This document shows, piece by piece, positions 4,997 to 34,636 of a DNA stretch of 64,000 nt. The translations under genes and the position numbers were made by a program. The stretch lies in sequence record KT895374.1, one strand, 5' to 3'. The notes beneath the pieces were generated by a model, which saw only the letters and a list, made by a program, of their open reading frames with translations, was not told the DNA's origin and did not search any database. Each line of letters starts with the position of its first letter. The first letter of the stretch is position 1.

Positions 4997-5009
4997 TAAA
5001 TTTAAAATA

Positions 5010-9356: not shown

Positions 9357-10151
9357 TTGAAAGTATTAAATTTTGAAGATATAAGTTTTCTGAAAAGAAA
9401 TCCTGACTTAATAAATACAAATGAATTAGTAACTGGTAATTATAGATTAAGTAAAGAGCTATTGGATAATATTGAACTTAGTGATTATGATTGGCAATAT
9501 ATTAGTAATAATCTAATTGAATATAAGTATTTATTTGATGAGGTAAATATATTTGATTATTTCTATAATTTATATTGGGATGCAATATTTGCAAATAATG
9601 TTTTTGAAGAAAAATCTTATAAGAGATTTATAAATAAGTTAGTTGAACTCTATAAAGAAACTAAACATCAATTTCTTTATAAAGATTACATTAATATTAA
9701 GGATGTAATATCAGGAATTGTATCAAGTAAAAAAATTGATGAAGAAGATATTTCTAATTTTGAATATATTGAAAATGTAACTAAAAGTTTTATTAACTCT
9801 AGCGGTAGCCCTTATTTGTGGGAAATTATTTCTTATAATTTAGAAATAGAAAGAGATTTTAGAATTATTGAAAAATTTAAAGATAAAATTATTTGGGATA
9901 AATTATTATCTCATTCATATGAAAAAATTAATTTAAAATTTTATAGTAAATATAAAGAATATTTTGGTGGTGGTGATAAAATTTTTATAGTTTCCCAAAA
10001 TAGTAATAAAGACTTAGTATATAAAATTATAAAAGAAAATGTGAATAGTAGTGATGAGTATAAAAATTATATTATTAAATGTATTAGTAAAAATAAATCT
10101 TTATGTAATGATAAGGATATTAATACTCTTATTAAGTTATATCCTATTTAA
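9357..10151 (+). CDS. Hypothetical degenerate Trp-repeat protein, array B
   Basis: YDWQYIS, LYWDAIF, IIWDKLL; paralog of previous ORF; ends KDINTLIKLYPI. Confidence 0.75.
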   Translation: MKVLNFEDISFLKRNPDLINTNELVTGNYRLSKELLDNIELSDYDWQYISNNLIEYKYLFDEVNIFDYFYNLYWDAIFANNVFEEKSYKRFINKLVELYKETKHQFLYKDYINIKDVISGIVSSKKIDEEDISNFEYIENVTKSFINSSGSPYLWEIISYNLEIERDFRIIEKFKDKIIWDKLLSHSYEKINLKFYSKYKEYFGGGDKIFIVSQNSNKDLVYKIIKENVNSSDEYKNYIIKCISKNKSLCNDKDINTLIKLYPI

Positions 10152-10278: not shown

Positions 10279-11796
10279 TTGATTAGTAATTTCCGTAAAT
10301 ATCACTCTGATAAAAATAAAGAAAGATTTAATGAGGAATTAATTTATAATAAAGGTAATGAAGACATTTTAAAATATTTAGATCCAATCTGTAGAACTTT
10401 AGAAATTATTCCAGAGATTAATTATAAGGGTGCTACAATTGAAAGAATTAATAAAGTATATAATTTTTCTAAAAGAGTAAAACCTGAACCACCTAAGAAA
10501 GAAAAAGATGGTAAGAGAAAAGAAAAGGAACCTAAAAGAGAAAAAGTAGAAATTGATATTGAGGAATCCGAATTTCAATTAATTAAACTTAATTTTGAAA
10601 TTGATAAAAAAGATGATGGTACAGTAACTAAGATTGAAAAGAGATTATTCTTCCCTAAGCTAATTGATTCACAGTATTTTGTTATTAATAATAATAGATA
10701 TTACCCAATCTATCAAATGTTAGATAGTGGTACATATCGAACTAATAAAGCTTTAACTTTAAAGACACTCTTAATGCCTATCGTTTTAAGGGAGAAAAAA
10801 GTTAGCTTTGATGATAGTGAAGGAAATACTTACAATCTTATGGAAGTAGATCTAGATTTATTTAAGCATAAGATTCCATTCCTGACTTATTATCTAGCTA
10901 ATTTTGGTTATCATGAAACAATTAAGTATTTTGGTTATGACGATCAAATTCATTTAATCCAAAAAGAAGATTTAGATCTAATGGAGGATAATGATAATAC
11001 TGTAACATTCATGATTACTAAAAATATTGCCTTAGTAGTTAATAAGGAACTATTAGAAGATAAGACTCATCATATTTTTGTAGGGACATTAATGAAATGC
11101 TTTAATTCAAGAATTAAATTTGAGAAAATTTTTGAATCTGATTATTGGGTAAAAAAATTGGGTGGTAACTTTACTACCAATAACAGTGATAAACAAGAAA
11201 AAGGACTAAGCATCTTATTATCATTTAGAAGAATTTTAGATGATTGGACAAAAGAAGTATTAAGAACTGAACCTGAAAATAAAGAAGATTCTTATGCCGT
11301 TATCAGATGGATGACTAAAAATTATTTAGATCTTATTAAGCAGGATAATATGAACCTTGCTAATAAGAGATTAAGGCTGTATGAATATCTACTACATCCT
11401 TTACTTTATAAGTTTAGTACTGGAACTTATCGAGTACTAAATAATAAGACTGAAAAATATAGAAAAATTTTAACTATCTTTAGTAATATTGATGAGGGAT
11501 TCTTAATCAATAAGATTGTAAATAATGCATTATTAAGATATGACAATAGTGTAAATAGCGTTAGTCTATTTCCATTAGTTCTTAAGTATACAATGAGTGG
11601 ACCACAAAGCCCATTTAATTCAAATAACGTAAATGATAGATATAGAGGTTTACATCCTTCTTATCTTGGTAGAATCAGTCTTACATCAACATCAGCAGGT
11701 GATCCAGGAGTTAGTGGTGTCTTATCACCATTCCTTAAACTACCAGAAGATGCAAATATGCATTTTACAAAAAAACCTGAAATAGAATTAGAATAA
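10279..11796 (+). CDS. rpoB: Multisubunit RNA polymerase beta subunit, N-terminal half (probably non-virion RNAP)
   Basis: INNNRYYPIYQM and RGLHPSYLGRISLTSTSAGDPGVSGVL correspond to beta INGxERVxxxQ and RDVHxSHYGRxCPIETPEGxNxGL; early promoter. Confidence 0.85.
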   Translation: MISNFRKYHSDKNKERFNEELIYNKGNEDILKYLDPICRTLEIIPEINYKGATIERINKVYNFSKRVKPEPPKKEKDGKRKEKEPKREKVEIDIEESEFQLIKLNFEIDKKDDGTVTKIEKRLFFPKLIDSQYFVINNNRYYPIYQMLDSGTYRTNKALTLKTLLMPIVLREKKVSFDDSEGNTYNLMEVDLDLFKHKIPFLTYYLANFGYHETIKYFGYDDQIHLIQKEDLDLMEDNDNTVTFMITKNIALVVNKELLEDKTHHIFVGTLMKCFNSRIKFEKIFESDYWVKKLGGNFTTNNSDKQEKGLSILLSFRRILDDWTKEVLRTEPENKEDSYAVIRWMTKNYLDLIKQDNMNLANKRLRLYEYLLHPLLYKFSTGTYRVLNNKTEKYRKILTIFSNIDEGFLINKIVNNALLRYDNSVNSVSLFPLVLKYTMSGPQSPFNSNNVNDRYRGLHPSYLGRISLTSTSAGDPGVSGVLSPFLKLPEDANMHFTKKPEIELE

Positions 11797-11842: not shown

Positions 11843-12535
11843 TTAATAAATGTAAATTTTTTTTCTATTAGCACTTTTACCAAAATTAGATCTCCACTTA
11901 GCTAATAATTCCTCTCTTCTATCTGAAGCATCTTGAAGGTCGTCAATAAATAACTCAATACTACCAAAAGCGGTCTGCATATTAGCAAAACGATGACGGA
12001 GATTATAAAGGACATCTTTTATATCTAATAATGCTAGTTTCAAAAATTCATCTTGTAGATTAGTTGGTATTGTTCCAAAATGTACTGGATGTACACAGTT
12101 AAAATCTACTCTTACGCCTCTAATATTATAAAGAGCAGGCATAATAGTTATAATGTTTGGATGCTCAAAATGAAATAATAAAGGGTTTTTATTATATGAA
12201 ATCATATCTGCACCCATTTGTCTAGCAAAAGGATCACCCATATCAGGACTATAGCCAGCTAATTCTCCACCAATATATGAAGTACCATCTACATAAGCTC
12301 TGTTAATATTTAATATTTCAAAATCAGTTGCAATATAAAATTTATTTAACGTTCCATTAATTTTACTATCTTGGTTAATGATAGTTGATTCTCTTAAAGG
12401 ATAGTATTTGCTAAACGTAATAAGGGTTTCTTTTTCAATACTGTCCATCATTTCCTTTGGATCAATTTCCAATTCATTAAATTTATATCCAAGTCTTTTT
12501 TCAATATGTCGTAAGATATAAGTACTAGATAACAT
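11843..12535 (-). CDS. Neck protein, T4 gp13-like
   Basis: ILRHIEKRLGYKFNELEIDPKEMMDSIEKETLITFSKYYP resembles the gp13 N-terminus (ILRRLGAP..VE....I.D.I..AL..Y..YH) as recalled. Confidence 0.6.
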   Translation of the reverse strand: MLSSTYILRHIEKRLGYKFNELEIDPKEMMDSIEKETLITFSKYYPLRESTIINQDSKINGTLNKFYIATDFEILNINRAYVDGTSYIGGELAGYSPDMGDPFARQMGADMISYNKNPLLFHFEHPNIITIMPALYNIRGVRVDFNCVHPVHFGTIPTNLQDEFLKLALLDIKDVLYNLRHRFANMQTAFGSIELFIDDLQDASDRREELLAKWRSNFGKSANRKKIYIY

Positions 12536-12592
12536 ATTTATCCTCCTTATAAATATAATTACTCTTCTAAATAAATAGAAGAGTAATTAAGA

Positions 12593-12902
12593 TTAGAGAT
12601 TTCTTAAGAACTTATTAATATCTTTTTGAATATCAGATTCAATAAAAATAATAGCCGTACCTTCATCATTTTTAACTGAAACTGATTTATTATCTTCATT
12701 TAAAGTCATTTTATTAAAGTCTAAATCTAATTCATTAGCAGTGATTTTTAAATTCTTACTTTCTTCTTTAAGATAATTTACAATAGATTGTCTCTCAACT
12801 TCTTGAATAAATCCTTCAGTAAGAACTTTTTGGTTAAAATCGTGGTCAGCTGATTCTTTAATAATATCTTGCTGATAAGCATTAGAATGTGATGGAAAAA
12901 TT
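12593..12902 (-). CDS. Prohead protease exon 3 (missing from ORF track)
   Basis: Reads (V)IFPSHSNAYQQDIIKESADHDF...KFLRNL-stop; joining GT+A restores TYDWVIFPSH. Confidence 0.88.
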
Positions 12903-13173
12903 CATTATCTTCTATTAACTTCGCTACTAGTTAATACGTTCTTTATGAACTGCTTATAGTTATCCTATAAGATGAGACTATATCTTCATTCTTATAAAAG
13001 AATGCTCTCTGTTTCCAATACGCTTGTATTGTACTCTACTCACTTAATATTAAGTTTTCGATAGTCGTTGAACCTTCCTCTTTTAGAGGATTGGATGCTG
13101 ATTGTCTAATGCTTTAGATTATTACCATTTTAGGTACTAAAGCTTCTAAAGAGTTTCCAGCAATTAAGAGAGT

Positions 13174-14118
13174 TTATACTGAGCAATTATATTTCAATAC
13201 CTCTTTAATTTTAGAAATATGATCTTCTTTATAACTAATCCTGATAAGTTTTTTATCATTCTCTTTACAAAATTTATCTTTTAGTTTATCCCTCTTTAAC
13301 TGTTTTTCAAAATTTTCTTGACCGTATGTTGGTTTAAAATGTTGAACACCATCGTATTCTATTAATAGATCATAAGAGGGTAAATAAAAATCGAATAAGA
13401 GATGATTTATATTTTTTAGACTATTAAATTTGTATTCTTCTATATATGAGATATTATTATCTTTAAAAAATTCTCTTAAATCTCTAACAGCTTTAGAGTC
13501 CTTATATAAATTTTTACAGTTAGGACAACCCTGATTATGTTTTGATAACATATCGGTTATTCTCATGGTAAAATCAAAAATAGAATCATCTATACAATTA
13601 TGAGAAAAAACCCCATAAGAATGTCCACTCTTTTGAAATACTGAATGTATAGTATATTCTTTTTCAATTAATAATTTAACAGATTCAACTGTATAGGTAT
13701 TTTTACCATAACAATCTTTACAGCCCTTTTTATTTCTATATATCATATTATCAGCTGTTGGAAACCATGTCTTATTACATTTCTTACACAATATTTCTAT
13801 TTTATCTGACATTTTAGTAAATTTTCCAACAACCTCATAATCTTCAATATTCCATTTACTGTAGAATTTTTTAAGATAATCATTATGATCTAACCTTTTA
13901 TTAGATTTCTTGTTTATAATTTTATTTTTAATAGCTAATTCTGGACATTGCCTTAAACCATCTAAATATCTTGGTTTAGTTTTCCATAAATAACCATCTT
14001 TATGCTCAAGAATAATAAAAGTATTAGCATTCTCATATGAAGATACAAGTCTATAATCAGGATATAGTTTATTAAGTCTTTTAATGAAGTTTTCTTTTCT
14101 TAAATTAAGATCATTCAT
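13174..14118 (-). CDS. Intron-encoded putative homing endonuclease (Zn-ribbon repeats + Vsr/DUF559-like PD-(D/E)xK domain)
   Basis: CKKC, CKDC, CPNC motifs, FDFYLPSYDLLIEYDGVQH; own SD gaggtg and late promoter. Confidence 0.85.
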   Translation of the reverse strand: MNDLNLRKENFIKRLNKLYPDYRLVSSYENANTFIILEHKDGYLWKTKPRYLDGLRQCPELAIKNKIINKKSNKRLDHNDYLKKFYSKWNIEDYEVVGKFTKMSDKIEILCKKCNKTWFPTADNMIYRNKKGCKDCYGKNTYTVESVKLLIEKEYTIHSVFQKSGHSYGVFSHNCIDDSIFDFTMRITDMLSKHNQGCPNCKNLYKDSKAVRDLREFFKDNNISYIEEYKFNSLKNINHLLFDFYLPSYDLLIEYDGVQHFKPTYGQENFEKQLKRDKLKDKFCKENDKKLIRISYKEDHISKIKEVLKYNCSV

Positions 14119-14145
14119 CGTATTTACACCTCGACATTTAATTAT

Positions 14146-14157
14146 TAATTAAATGTT
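14146..14157 (-). promoter_or_regulatory. Intron-internal late promoter for the endonuclease
   Basis: aaca-tttaat-ta 28 nt upstream of ATG. Confidence 0.65.
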
Positions 14158-14220
14158 AAGTAAATTACATACGATTTCTAAAGATTAAAAAGGCATATTT
14201 GATAAGATAATTATTGACTT

Positions 14221-14486
14221 ACCCAGTCATAGGTGACGATATGGAGTGGTTTTTCAATTCTAGTAACCTTACCCACATCTCTTGTAATTCCTCCAAGACC
14301 ACGCATTGAGAAAGCTACTTCTGTGCCTTGTTTAATAACTCCTGCCATGTCTCTACCACATAAAGTGTTTGCAGTAGCCACATTACCCATCAATACATTT
14401 CCTTCCCACCATACATCTTTAATCACATGTGACATTCTAGTCTGATCAATATATGTTTGTCGTTCTAAATCATTTGAAAGTGGATG
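14221..14486 (-). CDS. Prohead protease exon 2
   Basis: HPLSNDLERQ...AFSMRGLGG...TYDW; catalytic His and Ser motifs of T4 gp21-type proteases (GExxHP, SSRGLG). Confidence 0.9.
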
Positions 14487-14705
14487 CAATTATATTCATA
14501 TGAATTCGCTACTATTCATATCGCCCATATCTTAATGGACTGCTTATGATCTCTCATAAGATTAGACTATATCAAAACCCTCATCTTAAATGTTAGGGTT
14601 CTCTCTGTTTCGGTTATCAATCACTTATAACCTACTCTACTGACTTATTCTTAAATAAGCTTTCGATAGTCGTTGAACTATAAAACGTATTGAAATAATG
14701 AATTA

Positions 14706-14717
14706 AATATATATTAT
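14706..14717 (+). promoter_or_regulatory. Early-type promoter inside intron 1, antisense to it
   Basis: Exact aatatatattat, 37 nt before ATG 14754. Confidence 0.65.
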
Positions 14718-14753
14718 AAAAAAGATTTAACTAAATGGAAGGATTGAACTTAT

Positions 14754-15125
14754 ATGAAAGTTAATATTAATTACAGAGAATTAATTATTAAAGATTTCTT
14801 TCATGAAATTGATGAGAAATTTATAACCAACCCTGATATCAGACTTCATCCAAAGGCAATTGAATTCTTTAAAGAATATTTTATTATTAGATATGAGAAT
14901 GAAATTAAAGCAGGGAACGGTCATGAAGATAGAATTAGTATGAGCTATGAAGTTTATGAGAGAAATATACGAGCACTTGGTATCTTCATAAACGAGATCT
15001 ATCTTCTTATGCATGAAAAGAATAATGAAAACTACAGGTTTAAAAAATCCATCAATTTCCTCATTCAAAATCTTCGACATTTTGTTAAAAGCGGTAAGAC
15101 TCATTATTATCGCAACGAAGAATAG
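14754..15125 (+). CDS. Hypothetical protein encoded antisense within intron 1
   Basis: 123 aa, SD ggaagga, early promoter; stop abuts the P6 5' strand. Confidence 0.7.
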   Translation: MKVNINYRELIIKDFFHEIDEKFITNPDIRLHPKAIEFFKEYFIIRYENEIKAGNGHEDRISMSYEVYERNIRALGIFINEIYLLMHEKNNENYRFKKSINFLIQNLRHFVKSGKTHYYRNEE

Positions 15126-15238
15126 CTGCTGATTGTCTAATACTTTAGATTGTTACCTCTTTGGGTACTAAAGTTTCTAAAGAGTTTCCAGCAATTAAGA
15201 GAGTTTAGACACATACTTTAATATGTGAATGGCAATCT

Positions 15239-15469
15239 ACCAGCTTCGCCGAACAGTGACTTCCGTTTCAATTTCTCTTGGAATCGGGAGTCATTTACGG
15301 CTTGCATTAAAGCATCCTTTGCGTAAACACGTTTGTTTCTATTTTCAGCTTCTGCTTCTTGTAAAACTGTTTTAATTACAATATCGTCTCTTTCATGTTC
15401 CATAATATGAGGACGCATTGGTTCTGTTGCTGATTCAATAATAAAATAACCCTTAGTATTGTTATCCAT
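15239..15469 (-). CDS. Prohead protease exon 1 (spliced CDS 15469-15239 + 14486-14221 + 12902-12593, 268 aa)
   Basis: LQEAEAENRNKRVY..LFGEAG matches gp21-like N-terminus (NRNxRxY, GExxH); SD ggag. Confidence 0.9.
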
Positions 15470-15497
15470 CTCATTACTCCTTTAATAAGAATATAAA

Positions 15498-15509
15498 TAA
15501 TTTAATGTT
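15498..15509 (-). promoter_or_regulatory. Late promoter for protease/neck genes
   Basis: aaca-ttaaat-ta. Confidence 0.7.
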
Positions 15510-15537
15510 TTAGAAACTCTTTATGAATTAAAAATAA

Positions 15538-16047
15538 TTGGATGTGATTAAAATTAAATTAGATGATGGTACACTTTCACACTTAATGGAATCTTTTAAA
15601 AATAACTCTAAGAATTTTGAGGAAGAATGTATAGATTTATTAATTGATGATCCTGATGGTTCATTACTATTAAACATCTTACTAAATTTTAAATTAAGTG
15701 ATGAATTCCTAAAATTGAATGTAAAAAATTATAGACATAATCATTGGATTTATTTATCAGTTTTTCAAAAACCTAGTATAGACTTTACTGTAAAATATTT
15801 TGAAGAGATGAATCGTGGAAATGTAGTAATAGGTAATAAAAATGTAAATATCGAAATTATATATAGGATGGCTGATACTTTTAATGAATCTCAATGGGAT
15901 TTAATTAGTGAAAGACTTTATTTACCTAAAGAATTTTTAATTAAGTATGCAAATAAAATTAATTGGAATACTATATATGAAAGAAAAGACGAATTAATAG
16001 GATTTGATGAAGAAGTAGAAGTAATATATAAAATGTATAAATTATAA
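15538..16047 (+). CDS. Degenerate Trp-repeat protein, array C
   Basis: HWIYLSVFQKPS, QWDLISERLYLPKEFL, INWNTI; ends EEVEVIYKMYKL; start codon uncertain. Confidence 0.7.
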   Translation: MDVIKIKLDDGTLSHLMESFKNNSKNFEEECIDLLIDDPDGSLLLNILLNFKLSDEFLKLNVKNYRHNHWIYLSVFQKPSIDFTVKYFEEMNRGNVVIGNKNVNIEIIYRMADTFNESQWDLISERLYLPKEFLIKYANKINWNTIYERKDELIGFDEEVEVIYKMYKL

Positions 16048-31757: not shown

Positions 31758-32525
31758 TTATAGAATATCTGTTACCAAATTATATTGAGTGAAAGTACCT
31801 ATTTTTTTAATATCGTCCACTATCCATTCAATTAAAAATAAGTTTTTTTCTAGGTTATATTCTCTAATGTTTACTTTTATGTTACTTGCACCTACAACTA
31901 CCTTTTTAGAGGTTTTTGATTTTAAACCACTAATAAATTTTTTATTAAATATTACCTGTAAGTAACTTTCAATATCTTTTGGTAGATCATTAATGAAAAC
32001 TTTCTTTTCAATACTTTCACTATCAAACTCAAAATATATACTAAATGGTTTATTACCGTAGTTAAACATTTCAATACTTTGCTCTTCTTTGAAATGATAA
32101 GTTGCTAATATTTCTTTTTCTTCACCAAGATAATCCCATATCGTATCCTTAAAAAAACTCTCATTCAACTTATTATGGATTTTAAAATCTACCAGTGGAA
32201 TATCAGTTTCAAATAAAATTTCATTAGGAGTAATAGCCACTTTGTTAACATTCTGTCTATAAGAATTAAAAAATCCATATAATCTTGATCCATATATCTC
32301 AGTATTTAACTCACCAAAAATTTCATTAATTTTTTTATTTTTATGTTCATTAACTTCAAAATATACATATTTAGAATATTGATTATTGCTGATACATCTT
32401 ACTTTATTGTCCTTAATATAATATAATCCATTTTCTTCTATATTAATATTCTTTACTGTATCATTTACTTTATTTAGATATAAGCAAAATTCTTTAACTT
32501 CTTTTGGATCATCAATAATAATCAT
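31758..32525 (-). CDS. Hypothetical protein coupled to DNA polymerase gene
   Basis: 255 aa, ATGA overlap with polymerase exon 2. Confidence 0.7.
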   Translation of the reverse strand: MIIIDDPKEVKEFCLYLNKVNDTVKNINIEENGLYYIKDNKVRCISNNQYSKYVYFEVNEHKNKKINEIFGELNTEIYGSRLYGFFNSYRQNVNKVAITPNEILFETDIPLVDFKIHNKLNESFFKDTIWDYLGEEKEILATYHFKEEQSIEMFNYGNKPFSIYFEFDSESIEKKVFINDLPKDIESYLQVIFNKKFISGLKSKTSKKVVVGASNIKVNIREYNLEKNLFLIEWIVDDIKKIGTFTQYNLVTDIL

Positions 32526-33286
32526 TTGAAGACTACACTTCCTTTTTCCTCAATAGCATCAATGACTTCATCTAAATTAGGAAGATTAAACCACTTATGA
32601 GAAAAAGCAACTGGATCATTGGCGATTAGATCGTCAGCAATCTCTGGACCTTTATCTATTTTCTCATCGTTTTCATCTCTATCATATAAAGTAATTTTAC
32701 CAATTAATGTTTCTGAACCGATATTAAATGCCCTCATAATAGAAGGATATAGTGCGGCTAAGTCAAAGTCTACGCAGTTATCAAAGATATTTTTAGATAA
32801 TTTATCTTCAAGTACTTCATTTCCTACATAATCAACTAATCCTGGATCTGCAACAAAACCTCCACGAACTTTACCTTCAGGTTTTTCTTCAATAGCCGCT
32901 CTGTTATTAGAAATAACGAATCCTCTTTGATCAAGATGCATAGAGTAAATATTTCTAAGACAGATAGTTTTCTTCATTGCCTTTTCAATTCTTGTACCTG
33001 TTAACATTGAAATTTGATAAATCATATCAACATCTTTGTTCTTCTCTTCCATTAACATCATCATAATTGTATCTTGAATGTTATAGAACATGAATTTCTT
33101 ATAATCTCTAATATGGAAATCATGAAAATCTCCATCAATGTCATCTTTTCTCATTCCTACTTCTTTTTCACCGATATAATCTAATGAGTAGGATTCTTCT
33201 TTACCCTGACCTTTTCTTAAGTTAGCATATAGGTTCATCGCATCTAAATAAACAGAGTAACTAGTAACATTAAATTCATTATTATT
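32522..33286 (-). CDS. Family B DNA polymerase N-terminal subunit, exon 2
   Basis: YSLDYIGEKEVG, ExoIII YNIQD, polymerase motif A DFDLAALYPSIM. Confidence 0.88.
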   Translation of the reverse strand, partial: NNNEFNVTSYSVYLDAMNLYANLRKGQGKEESYSLDYIGEKEVGMRKDDIDGDFHDFHIRDYKKFMFYNIQDTIMMMLMEEKNKDVDMIYQISMLTGTRIEKAMKKTICLRNIYSMHLDQRGFVISNNRAAIEEKPEGKVRGGFVADPGLVDYVGNEVLEDKLSKNIFDNCVDFDLAALYPSIMRAFNIGSETLIGKITLYDRDENDEKIDKGPEIADDLIANDPVAFSHKWFNLPNLDEVIDAIEEKGSVVFK

Positions 33287-33608
33287 CGTTTTCTTCATAC
33301 AGGTTCGCTAATCCTGTACCGACAATTGTATTGTCAGCTCTATGTTTCCATAGAGACGAGACTATATCTTCATCTTATAATTTTATATAAGATGTTTCCT
33401 TTTTCCAATAGGCTTCTATTGTACTCTACTTGCTTAATAATAAGCTTTTGATAGTCGTTGAACCTTCCCCTTATTAGAGGATTGGCTGCTGATTGTCCAA
33501 CCCTATTAATTTTTAACTATCACGCTCACCGTTACCAGTCACGTTGTAGTTTAATAGATTCTAAGGATATTCCAGCAATTAAAGAAATTTAAAGCCGACC
33601 ATTTGTCC
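33287..33608 (-). mobile_element. ORF-less group I intron in DNA polymerase
   Basis: P1 GCCGAU|...GUCGGC with U-G pair, P/Q/R/S elements, P9 hairpins, terminal G; in-frame join QDPAD|NNNEF; exact 3' site inferred. Confidence 0.88.
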
Positions 33609-34535
33609 ATCGGCTGGATCTTGGTTTCTTAAGTCCTTATGGTATCTAATCTTTTTATATTTAAAATCTTTAGGTACAATTACATCTTTAGGATCTACAC
33701 CTAATTTTACTAATCTATTCATCATTGTTGGATTATCAAAACCGTGTCCATTCCAAGCTAATACAAAGTCTGGTCTAATTTCCTCATTAATAATCTCATA
33801 ATATCTTTTAATTAGATCAAGTTCACTTTCATACTCTTCAATAACAAATTCCATGTCTCTGCCATTTAAAGGTTCTTTATATTTTTCTTTCAATTCTTCA
33901 ATAAGACCATTAACATTACTCATTGTTTCTACATAAGAATCATGATCATATTTTAAACACAATGTATAGGTTTTTAAATTATGCATATCAGTCAGTGTTG
34001 CAATATTAACAGGTGCTAATGCCTCTTCAGGATCAGGAAATCCATTAATATTGCTAACATCATTTTCTATATCGTATACCACTTTAGTTAGCGGATACTG
34101 ATTTTCTTCACTTGGATACTTCTTAAGAAATTCAGAAATATAATAATCTTGAATGTTTACGTCTGATCCGTGAACTCGATTATCTAGATGAATTCTTCTT
34201 AGTTTTTGTCCGATATTATATTTATCATCAGAGTTAAAGATACTATCATAATATCTTTTAAGTCCTGGATCGTCTAATGTTTGGATAATTGATTTATAAA
34301 CGTCCTTATAAAAGCATTTAACGGGATATACTTTTTCTTTAGAAATAAAATTTAATTTCTCTTGACTTTCCCAATATTCTGGTTTTGTTACATAGTATTG
34401 CAAAGTAGGTTTCTCAATAGTTTTTAATATTTTCTTACCGTTTTTATCTTTAATAATAAATAAGATTTTATCAGAATCCATACCAGCTTTTCTATCTTGA
34501 TAAATATAGTGGGTATTAATTAATTGAAACGACAA
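33609..34535 (-). CDS. Family B DNA polymerase N-terminal subunit, exon 1 (3'-5' exonuclease)
   Basis: ExoI YDIEND, ExoII LAWNGHGFD; likely TTG start 34535 after SD agagga. Confidence 0.88.
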
Positions 34536-34636
34536 AAAGACCAATCCTCTCTTTATAACCTTGATTCTATCAATTTTTAGTTTATTATTCTCATAAAAAG
34601 AAACAGATTTGAAATTAATCAAATCTGTTTAATTTA

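Follow-up and report, generated by a model that had tools for sequence, protein, structure and literature searches.

Two predicted group I introns divide the prohead protease gene of the Bacillus jumbo phage BpSp

Organization of the protease locus

The DNA analysed here, a stretch of 64,000 nucleotides (nt) that we call the window, is taken from record KT895374.1, the Bacillus pumilus jumbo phage vB_BpuM-BpSp (BpSp; genus Takahashivirus), which is a relative of phages AR9 and PBS1, and positions 12500-15600 of the window are 100% identical to that record. Between 15469 and 12593 on the minus strand lies the prohead protease locus, which is very probably a single late gene carrying two mobile group I introns and spliced to an mRNA for a protein of 268 amino acids (aa). 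In GenBank this region is given as five separate coding sequences (CDSs; gp187-gp191), and no join is annotated. The gp191 product, an 83-aa "putative prohead core scaffold and protease" encoded on the minus strand, comprises the open reading frame (ORF) of exon 1 and runs six codons into intron 1; gp190 (14754-15125) is a CDS on the plus strand, opposite to the protease gene; and gp189, gp188 (13174-14118) and gp187 (12593-12709), all on the minus strand and all labelled "hypothetical protein", correspond to the ORF holding protease exon 2, to the ORF of intron 2 and to a 38-aa internal ORF of exon 3, respectively. A proteomics paper on BpSp took Gp191 as the protease and left the introns unmentioned (PMC4870245); the published "protease" covers just an 83-aa stub.

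Unless stated otherwise, the features described below are on the minus strand. Exon 1 (15239-15469) comprises codons 1-77 and ends with the residues F-G-E-A-G, exon 2 (14221-14486) extends from His78 to the first two bases of Val166, and exon 3 (12593-12902), which has no start codon of its own, runs from the third base of Val166 to the stop codon. Intron 1 (14487-15238; 752 nt) has its ribozyme in two parts, from 15238 to about 15117 and from about 14682 to 14487, and intron 2 (12903-14220; 1318 nt) has its ribozyme core at 13184-12903. When the segments 15469-15239, 14486-14221 and 12902-12593 were joined, 807 nt encoding 268 aa and a stop codon were obtained in an unbroken frame, which confirmed the coordinates of an original prediction made from the sequence of the window. 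That prediction also held that the third exon would escape an ORF search, and in the ORF list this exon is indeed represented only by the 38-aa ORF that starts at an internal ATG (12593-12709). The 3′ end of exon 1 is GGT and that of exon 2 is GGGT, and the last base is G in intron 1 as well as in intron 2 (12903). Directly after the protease stop codon there is a terminator-like hairpin with a 14-pair stem and a T-rich tail (12556-12589), the sole site of this kind within 12400-15700.

Both junctions could be compared with related phages. Intron 1 had been placed between Gly and the catalytic His (EAG|HP); it abuts the His78 codon, and the annotated exon join of AR9 g114 falls on the same EAG|HP site, matching junction 1 of BpSp. 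Intron 2 had been placed inside the motif D-W-V|IFPSH, and at this site the AR9 homologue is uninterrupted across ...TWDWVIFPSHSNAYQ..., so that junction 2 of BpSp is fixed to the nucleotide. The protease of phage MarsHill is likewise uninterrupted there. The reading frame, together with these intron-less alleles, points to exact ligation of the exons in BpSp.

As judged from its sequence, the three-exon gene encodes a T4 gp21-like (S77) prohead protease, a candidate processor of scaffold and capsid. The pairwise BLASTP comparison of the spliced product with T4 gp21 gave one alignment block, covering residues 6-179 and spanning both junctions (E 2e-16). The Pfam family Peptidase_S77 (PF03420) matched exon 2 alone at profile positions 95-156 (28.8 bits; cut-off 27), and a match of exon 1 at profile positions 42-88 (19.2 bits) was collinear with it. 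Exon 1 also matched phrog_31489, a head maturation protease family (1e-47), and a search of solved structures by sequence with the AR9 protease region gave no match. In the alignment, BpSp His78 (GEAGHP) corresponds to H85 of T4 gp21 (GELNHP) and Ser137 (AFSMRGLG) to S140, the first Ser of GVSSRGLG; the H85A/S140A mutant of gp21 is catalytically dead (bioRxiv 10.64898/2026.03.04.709575). The gp21-like identity that had been proposed is thus borne out by the S77 match above cut-off, the alignment with gp21 and the conservation of His and Ser.

The triad of family S77 is described as His-Ser-Asp (PMC5694885), and the probable third catalytic residue in BpSp is Asp164 (YDWV), which aligns with D168 of T4 gp21 (GVDAV) and is kept in AR9 and MarsHill. 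By alignment to T4 gp21, the codons of this predicted triad are located at 14486-14484 (His78), 14309-14307 (Ser137) and 14228-14226 (Asp164), and the triad would be wholly within exon 2. Intron 1 immediately precedes the His78 codon and intron 2 follows the Asp164 codon at a distance of 5 nt, in agreement with the claim that the introns are at catalytic motifs.

These data also bear on the idea that the protease gene is a pseudogene broken by insertions and that another protease matures the BpSp capsid, for which the presence of fragments only in the deposited annotation could be cited. However, the exons contain no frameshift or stop codon, are 58-61% identical to AR9 g114 (58% between the two first exons) with the catalytic motifs included, and have codon-usage scores that are typical for BpSp genes in all three cases. 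In addition, a translated search of the BpSp record with the AR9 protease region led to this locus only. In mature heads, most of the prohead protease has been degraded or lost. Therefore, the failure to detect Gp191 in the virion proteome (PMC4870245), which could also be taken in favor of a pseudogene, is expected, and we regard a pseudogene as extremely improbable.

Group I ribozymes of the two introns

The core elements P, Q, R and S (AATTGCTGG, AATCAGCA, GTTCAACGACTA and GATATAGTC), which form P4 and P7, are present as exact matches and in the right order in both introns, at 15196, 15134, 14678 and 14573 in intron 1 and at 13165, 13103, 13073 and 12984 in intron 2. In each case the preceding exon base is U and the last intron base is G. 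Compensatory variants of P4 occur among the relatives. Covariation was analyzed in a set of 15 introns from BpSp, AR9, Goe21, a Clostridioides phage, Machias and Madawaska. P3 formed with 6/6 pairs in 15/15 introns, by 12 different strand combinations, and the P8 and P9 hairpins form in the longer introns of the Bacillus and Clostridioides phages, including those of BpSp. RNAalifold analysis of the 3′ domains of 10 introns gave P7, P7.2, P8, P9, P9.1 and P9.2, with compensatory changes in 25 of the 39 pairs. When blastn was run with the intron core, 305 phage records were matched, among them the AR9 terminase introns, many Staphylococcus phages and Lactococcus phage Tuc2009. The cores, the U before the 5′ splice site, the terminal G and the covarying helices all support the prediction of two group I introns, and both are of the phage IA-like type, with P7.1/P7.2 present. 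Inteins were ruled out, since the inserts contain stop codons and have cores at the RNA level, and group II introns were ruled out by the lack of such features and by the explicit group I core.

The core of intron 2 (12953-13200) matched the Rfam model RF00028, whose gathering score is 50 bits, with 61.6 bits (E 1.7e-15). Its internal guide sequence (13178-13188) was found immediately 5′ of P3. Within it, GCUCAGU (13184-13178) forms P1 by pairing at 7/7 positions with ACUGGGU, the 3′-terminal 7 nt of exon 2, with U.G at the splice site, and this match is unique within the 1318-nt intron; the adjoining AAUU (13188-13185) forms P10 with the 4 nt at the start of exon 3. Because the guide sits just after the 314-aa endonuclease ORF, overlapping its last codons, the ORF and its leader lie in the P1 loop. 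An earlier guess at P1, with GCCU near the 5′ end and the ORF in the P2 loop, was displaced by this 7/7 guide. Guide and exon end (GACTGGGT) are identical in the metagenomic loci L010 and L012, and in intron B of Machias the exon end is TATGACTGGGT and the guide is the variant GCUUAGU.

Intron 1 matched RF00028 in separate pieces, with 28 bits (E 4.7e-5) and 11 bits, because an insert of about 435 nt in loop L6 splits the core. The ORF-less site-1 intron of AR9, to which intron 1 is 78% identical over alignable columns, gave 66 bits. The check with Infernal group I models that had been proposed was therefore positive for the core of intron 2, and for intron 1 it yielded the two pieces only. 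P1 of intron 1 is UGGU/GCCA, with U.G at the splice site and a GAA/UUC extension beyond a 2-nt bulge; it is conserved in AR9, where an A-to-G change retains the pair as G.U. The P2 hairpin that comes after P1 differs between BpSp and AR9 in sequence and not in pairing. The GCUAU/AUAGU stem (P6) closes the L6 insert, and helices P3, P7.2, P8, P9 and P9.2 covary with the relatives.

It is conceivable that only intron 2 self-splices efficiently, while intron 1 depends on an auxiliary protein or RNA or is poorly spliced and in this way throttles the protease. The fragmentary RF00028 match, the 435-nt insert in L6, the short P1 and the exact early promoter directed antisense through the 5′ half would all be compatible with such a poor intron, but the core helices are all intact and covary with those of the relatives, the insert is closed by the P6 stem, and the phage is viable and needs the protease. 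The td and nrdB introns of T4 tolerate large ORF-bearing P6 loops, which also counts against this possibility, and we consider it unlikely.

The cores and guides are also relevant to the question of whether the protease is a split gene, in which the three exon-bearing ORFs are translated apart and their products assemble unspliced, the inserts being dead relics or independent mobile genes. AR9-like phages do have RNA polymerase subunits that are encoded as distinct polypeptides (PMC5312081, PMC7598289), the ORF of exon 1 has a start codon of its own and ends six codons into intron 1, the ORF containing exon 2 opens with a TTG located 3 nt before the exon, and GenBank lists the pieces separately. 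Nevertheless, the 5′ end of exon 3 has neither a start codon nor a ribosome-binding site, the motifs in which the breaks occur are conserved and are uninterrupted in AR9, MarsHill and T4, and full group I cores, exon-matched guides and a retained terminal G are unexpected in dead relics. A split gene thus appears very improbable.

According to the preferred reading, that of one gene with two spliced introns, the 5′ end of the protease pre-mRNA is probably about 30 nt ahead of the ATG. Each ribozyme would fold and, through its guide, base-pair with the 3′ end of the exon preceding it (UGGU/GCCA in intron 1, ACUGGGU/GCUCAGU in intron 2); guanosine-initiated transesterification would then remove the introns and ligate the exons to give the mRNA of the 268-aa protease. 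Splicing of both introns is what the sequence of the locus leads us to infer. Without both splicing events only the 83-aa stub would be made from the start of the gene, and capsid maturation would therefore depend on both.

Endonuclease and antisense gene carried by the introns

Intron 2 contains gp188 (13174-14118), a candidate Vsr-like homing endonuclease of 314 aa in which zinc-finger repeats are combined with a Vsr-like nuclease domain at the C-terminus. It matched phrog_559 (3.8e-56) and phrog_9084, named "homing endonuclease" (1.6e-29), and there were weak Pfam matches to DUF4379 and DUF559. The AlphaFold model has a predicted local distance difference test (pLDDT) value of 85.8. By Foldseek, the model matched E. 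coli Vsr (1vsr) in its C-terminal domain; the probability was 1.00 and the template modeling (TM) score was 0.56 by target, over 126 columns and with an E of only 6e-3. Invariant residues in the C-terminal part are D243, E254, H260, D277 and K280. A search of solved structures by sequence gave no match for gp188. Its phage homologues number in the hundreds and carry annotations as group I intron, HNH or VSR homing endonucleases; for those of AR9-like and Staphylococcus phages the labels are group I intron or VSR. The C-terminal Vsr-like nuclease fold and the intron-encoded location are shared with the EDxHD/Vsr-like intron homing endonucleases, the I-Bth0305I class. Such enzymes form a large outgroup (PMC12350094).

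The closest metagenomic homologues of gp188, P0004 (44%) and P0007 (42%), are directly after ...YDWV of S77 protease genes. In L012 (contig ERZ28595437 scaffold_2193, from an uncultured phage and intron-less at the His site) and in L013, a 165-aa S77 ORF ending with ...ITYDWV is followed by the endonuclease, GCTCAGTATAA, a group I core and exon 3. The same endonuclease-intron arrangement plus a site-1 intron is found in L011 and in L010 (contig ERZ27239220 k141_222374, also metagenomic and from an uncultured phage). This strong comparative evidence suggests that the endonuclease and the intron form a unit specific to the site-2 target. Intron 2 would then be a typical homing element: its P1-loop endonuclease, possibly expressed from a separate late promoter, would cleave protease alleles that lack the intron, at the conserved stretch encoding D-W-V/x-F-P-S-H, and repair after the cut would copy intron 2 into the allele. 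The site-1 intron of L010 is three codons upstream of the His codon and represents a third distinct insertion point in the His hot spot.

The early-promoter and late-promoter consensus sequences of AR9 have been reported (PMC5312081). The AR9-type late-promoter-like motif AACA-N6-TA occurs at 15498-15509, 40 nt before the protease ATG, and at 14146-14157 in intron 2, 39 nt before the endonuclease ATG. No further match is present on the minus strand within 12500-15650, and the density of the motif on that strand is 0.58 per kilobase. On the plus strand, at 14705-14724, L6 of intron 1 contains an AR9-type early (virion RNA polymerase) promoter consensus, AAATATATATTAT-N6-G, with 0 mismatches and antisense to the protease. 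Allowing one mismatch at most, 8 matches to the early consensus were found in the window as compared with 0.82 expected, and none of 100 shuffles reached 8; therefore, BpSp appears to share the AR9 early promoter. The other matches are at 5009, 5442, 10151, 37402 (minus strand), 45877, 55198 and 55964, and that at 10151 is upstream of a 505-aa ORF (10279-11796). From their sequence, the early and late promoter-like motifs are presumed to be used as promoters.

Downstream of the L6 promoter on the plus strand is gp190 (14754-15125), an orphan ORF of 123 aa that lies antisense in intron 1 and is preceded, at a distance of 8 nt, by a GGAAGGA ribosome-binding site. A search of 5.8 billion proteins and one of the phage collection gave no homologue, Pfam, PHROG and NCBIfam gave nothing above threshold, the atlas matches were all below the informative range, and the stored model is poor (pLDDT 0.46). 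The codon-usage score of gp190 is 0.19, compared with -0.04 for the ORF that overlaps it on the sense strand. This overlapping ORF (14781-15104; 107 aa), which is hydrophobic and of low complexity, is probably a shadow of gp190. Intron 1 is the counterpart of the ORF-less AR9 intron, BpSp having gained the early promoter, the ribosome-binding site and gp190 in L6.

A more speculative reading, which we hold to be decidedly unlikely, is that intron 1 works on both strands at two times of infection and that the site-2 endonuclease is separately a weapon. Early in infection, the virion RNA polymerase may transcribe gp190 antisense from the L6 promoter and continue through the 5′ half of the ribozyme and exon 1, and later the same DNA may be transcribed in the opposite direction within the protease pre-mRNA. 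The antisense RNA or gp190 could delay or tune the splicing of intron 1, and hence the timing of the protease. The site-2 endonuclease could attack co-infecting intron-less relatives by cutting their protease gene.

Several points weigh against the reading of the locus as one gene with two spliced introns. No sequencing runs holding this sequence were found, and no description of these introns was found in the literature on BpSp. The Rfam scan of the whole 64-kilobase window at the gathering threshold gave 0 matches, and that of a 3.3-kilobase region with E up to 10 gave noise only. RF00028 was found solely by scans of less than about 800 nt with the ORFs left out, and the family assignment rests on these sub-region scans and on comparison. 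The miss in the whole-window scan arises because the speed filters fail in AT-rich sequence, especially where ORFs split the core. As a whole, intron 1 scores below the gathering threshold of Rfam, its P1 is short, with 4 base pairs and a further 3 across the 2-nt bulge, and the 435-nt L6 insert with its antisense promoter could impair folding. Moreover, the catalytic assignment of Asp164 was made by alignment alone, and the cleavage activity and the target of gp188 are predicted ones. The observations made in BpSp itself are the sequence anatomy, the junctions, homology, covariation and the synteny of the endonuclease-intron unit, and with these the reading of the protease locus in the original prediction was supported.

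Interrupted protease genes in related phages

The original prediction considered a doubly interrupted head-maturation protease to be unusual. This part did not hold, since intron-split proteases are already annotated in AR9, MarsHill, Machias and Madawaska. In AR9, as well as in PBS1, Goe21 and Internexus, g114 is interrupted by a group I intron, and the insertion site, GGT|CAY, is the one occupied by intron 1 in BpSp. The AR9 intron shares the guide region and the core with BpSp intron 1, and the CDS join is annotated in KU878088. It is 345 nt long (L002, 2705-3049) and has no ORF, whereas BpSp intron 1 has the 435-nt antisense early-gene cassette in L6. Unlike that of BpSp, the AR9 protease gene has no intron at site 2. 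The AR9 terminase gene is annotated as a five-piece join. Inspection of its large subunit gene (L006, 800-2200) revealed four related tandem group I introns separated by short exons, and one of these introns carries the compensatory P4 variant TTTCTGG/CAGAAG.

Korn et al. listed the prohead scaffold/protease among intron-disrupted genes (bioRxiv 10.1101/2020.12.14.422802). The MarsHill protease is annotated with two exons and a LAGLIDADG gene, and those of Machias and Madawaska with three exons each; the exon boundaries in these Staphylococcus phages are predictions from protein alignment only. As in BpSp, their protease introns cluster at the His codon and at the Y-D-W-V codons. Intron B of Machias is at the same nucleotide as BpSp intron 2 and has a similar guide, and the Staphylococcus site-1 intron is 5 nt upstream of the Bacillus site. 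The Staphylococcus introns are miniature (154-184 nt) and ORF-less, save for the MarsHill intron with its LAGLIDADG gene. No match was obtained by an Rfam scan of the Staphylococcus loci (L003-L005), though the P, Q, R and S cores are plainly present.

In Machias (L003, 3342-4104) the protease gene appears to hold three miniature group I introns of 154, 179 and 159 nt, the last two being separated by an 11-nt micro-exon, TATGACTGGGT (Y-D-W-V). The four-exon join is in frame and matches the uninterrupted MarsHill sequence, whereas GenBank has a three-piece join only. The site-1 introns of Machias (L003, 3342-3495) and Madawaska (L004, 3341-3495), about 155 nt in length, keep P, Q, R, S, P3, P6 and P9. 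Because the gap between R and S is only 28 nt, there is no room for the P8 hairpin or P7.1/P7.2, and these introns would be unusually small for group I ribozymes.

The classical phage group I introns are those of td, nrdB and nrdD in T4, of the DNA polymerase gene in SPO1 and of Twort orf142, which has three introns (PMC12350094). Like the BpSp introns, these self-splicing introns have IA-type ribozymes, interrupt essential genes at conserved or catalytic sites and often carry an endonuclease in a peripheral loop, and several introns can be present in one gene. The host genes differ, being genes of nucleotide or DNA metabolism in the classical systems and that of a virion-assembly protease in BpSp, and the BpSp endonuclease, unlike those of the classical introns, is of the Vsr-like class and is located in the P1 loop. 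With regard to rarity in virion genes, intron splicing in capsid and tail genes has been reported for Cluster J mycobacteriophages (PMC3706429); these phages and genes are unrelated to BpSp. A precedent for an early gene within a late-gene intron is AR9 g190, which lies with its promoter inside an intron of the late gene g189 (PMC5312081). The host gene is a different one there, and BpSp gp190, which is antisense, has no detectable homologue. In summary, the phenomenon is already described in this phage group and the BpSp case was previously unannotated; BpSp is distinguished by what its introns carry, a Vsr-like endonuclease encoded in the P1 loop of intron 2 and an antisense early-gene cassette within loop L6 of intron 1.

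A third group I intron of BpSp, which is ORF-less, was observed at 33287-33640 (RF00028, 87.5 bits, E 5.6e-23). It splits the family B DNA polymerase gene into an exonuclease-domain ORF (33579-34622) and a polymerase-domain ORF (32522-33298), and the apparent ATG of the latter is inside the 3′ end of the intron. Matches to the intron core query were found at 12 places in the BpSp genome, 8 in that of AR9 and 13 in that of Internexus. Judging from the 12 core matches, many further genes of BpSp are probably intron-split and mis-annotated as fragments.

The working principles of group I introns are not changed by the BpSp case. For the phage itself, the five deposited features gp187-gp191 would become one essential three-exon gene, a homing endonuclease gene and an intron-embedded early gene. 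Because the whole-window Rfam scan missed all three group I introns of this AT-rich stretch, group I introns of jumbo phages are probably under-annotated. In the AR9-like jumbo phages, two intron hot spots bracket the catalytic His-to-Asp segment of the protease gene, with at least three insertion points around the His codon and at least three around Y-D-W-V in Bacillus, Staphylococcus and uncultured phages, and these hot spots conform to a general rule, by which the targets of homing elements lie in invariant catalytic coding sequence.

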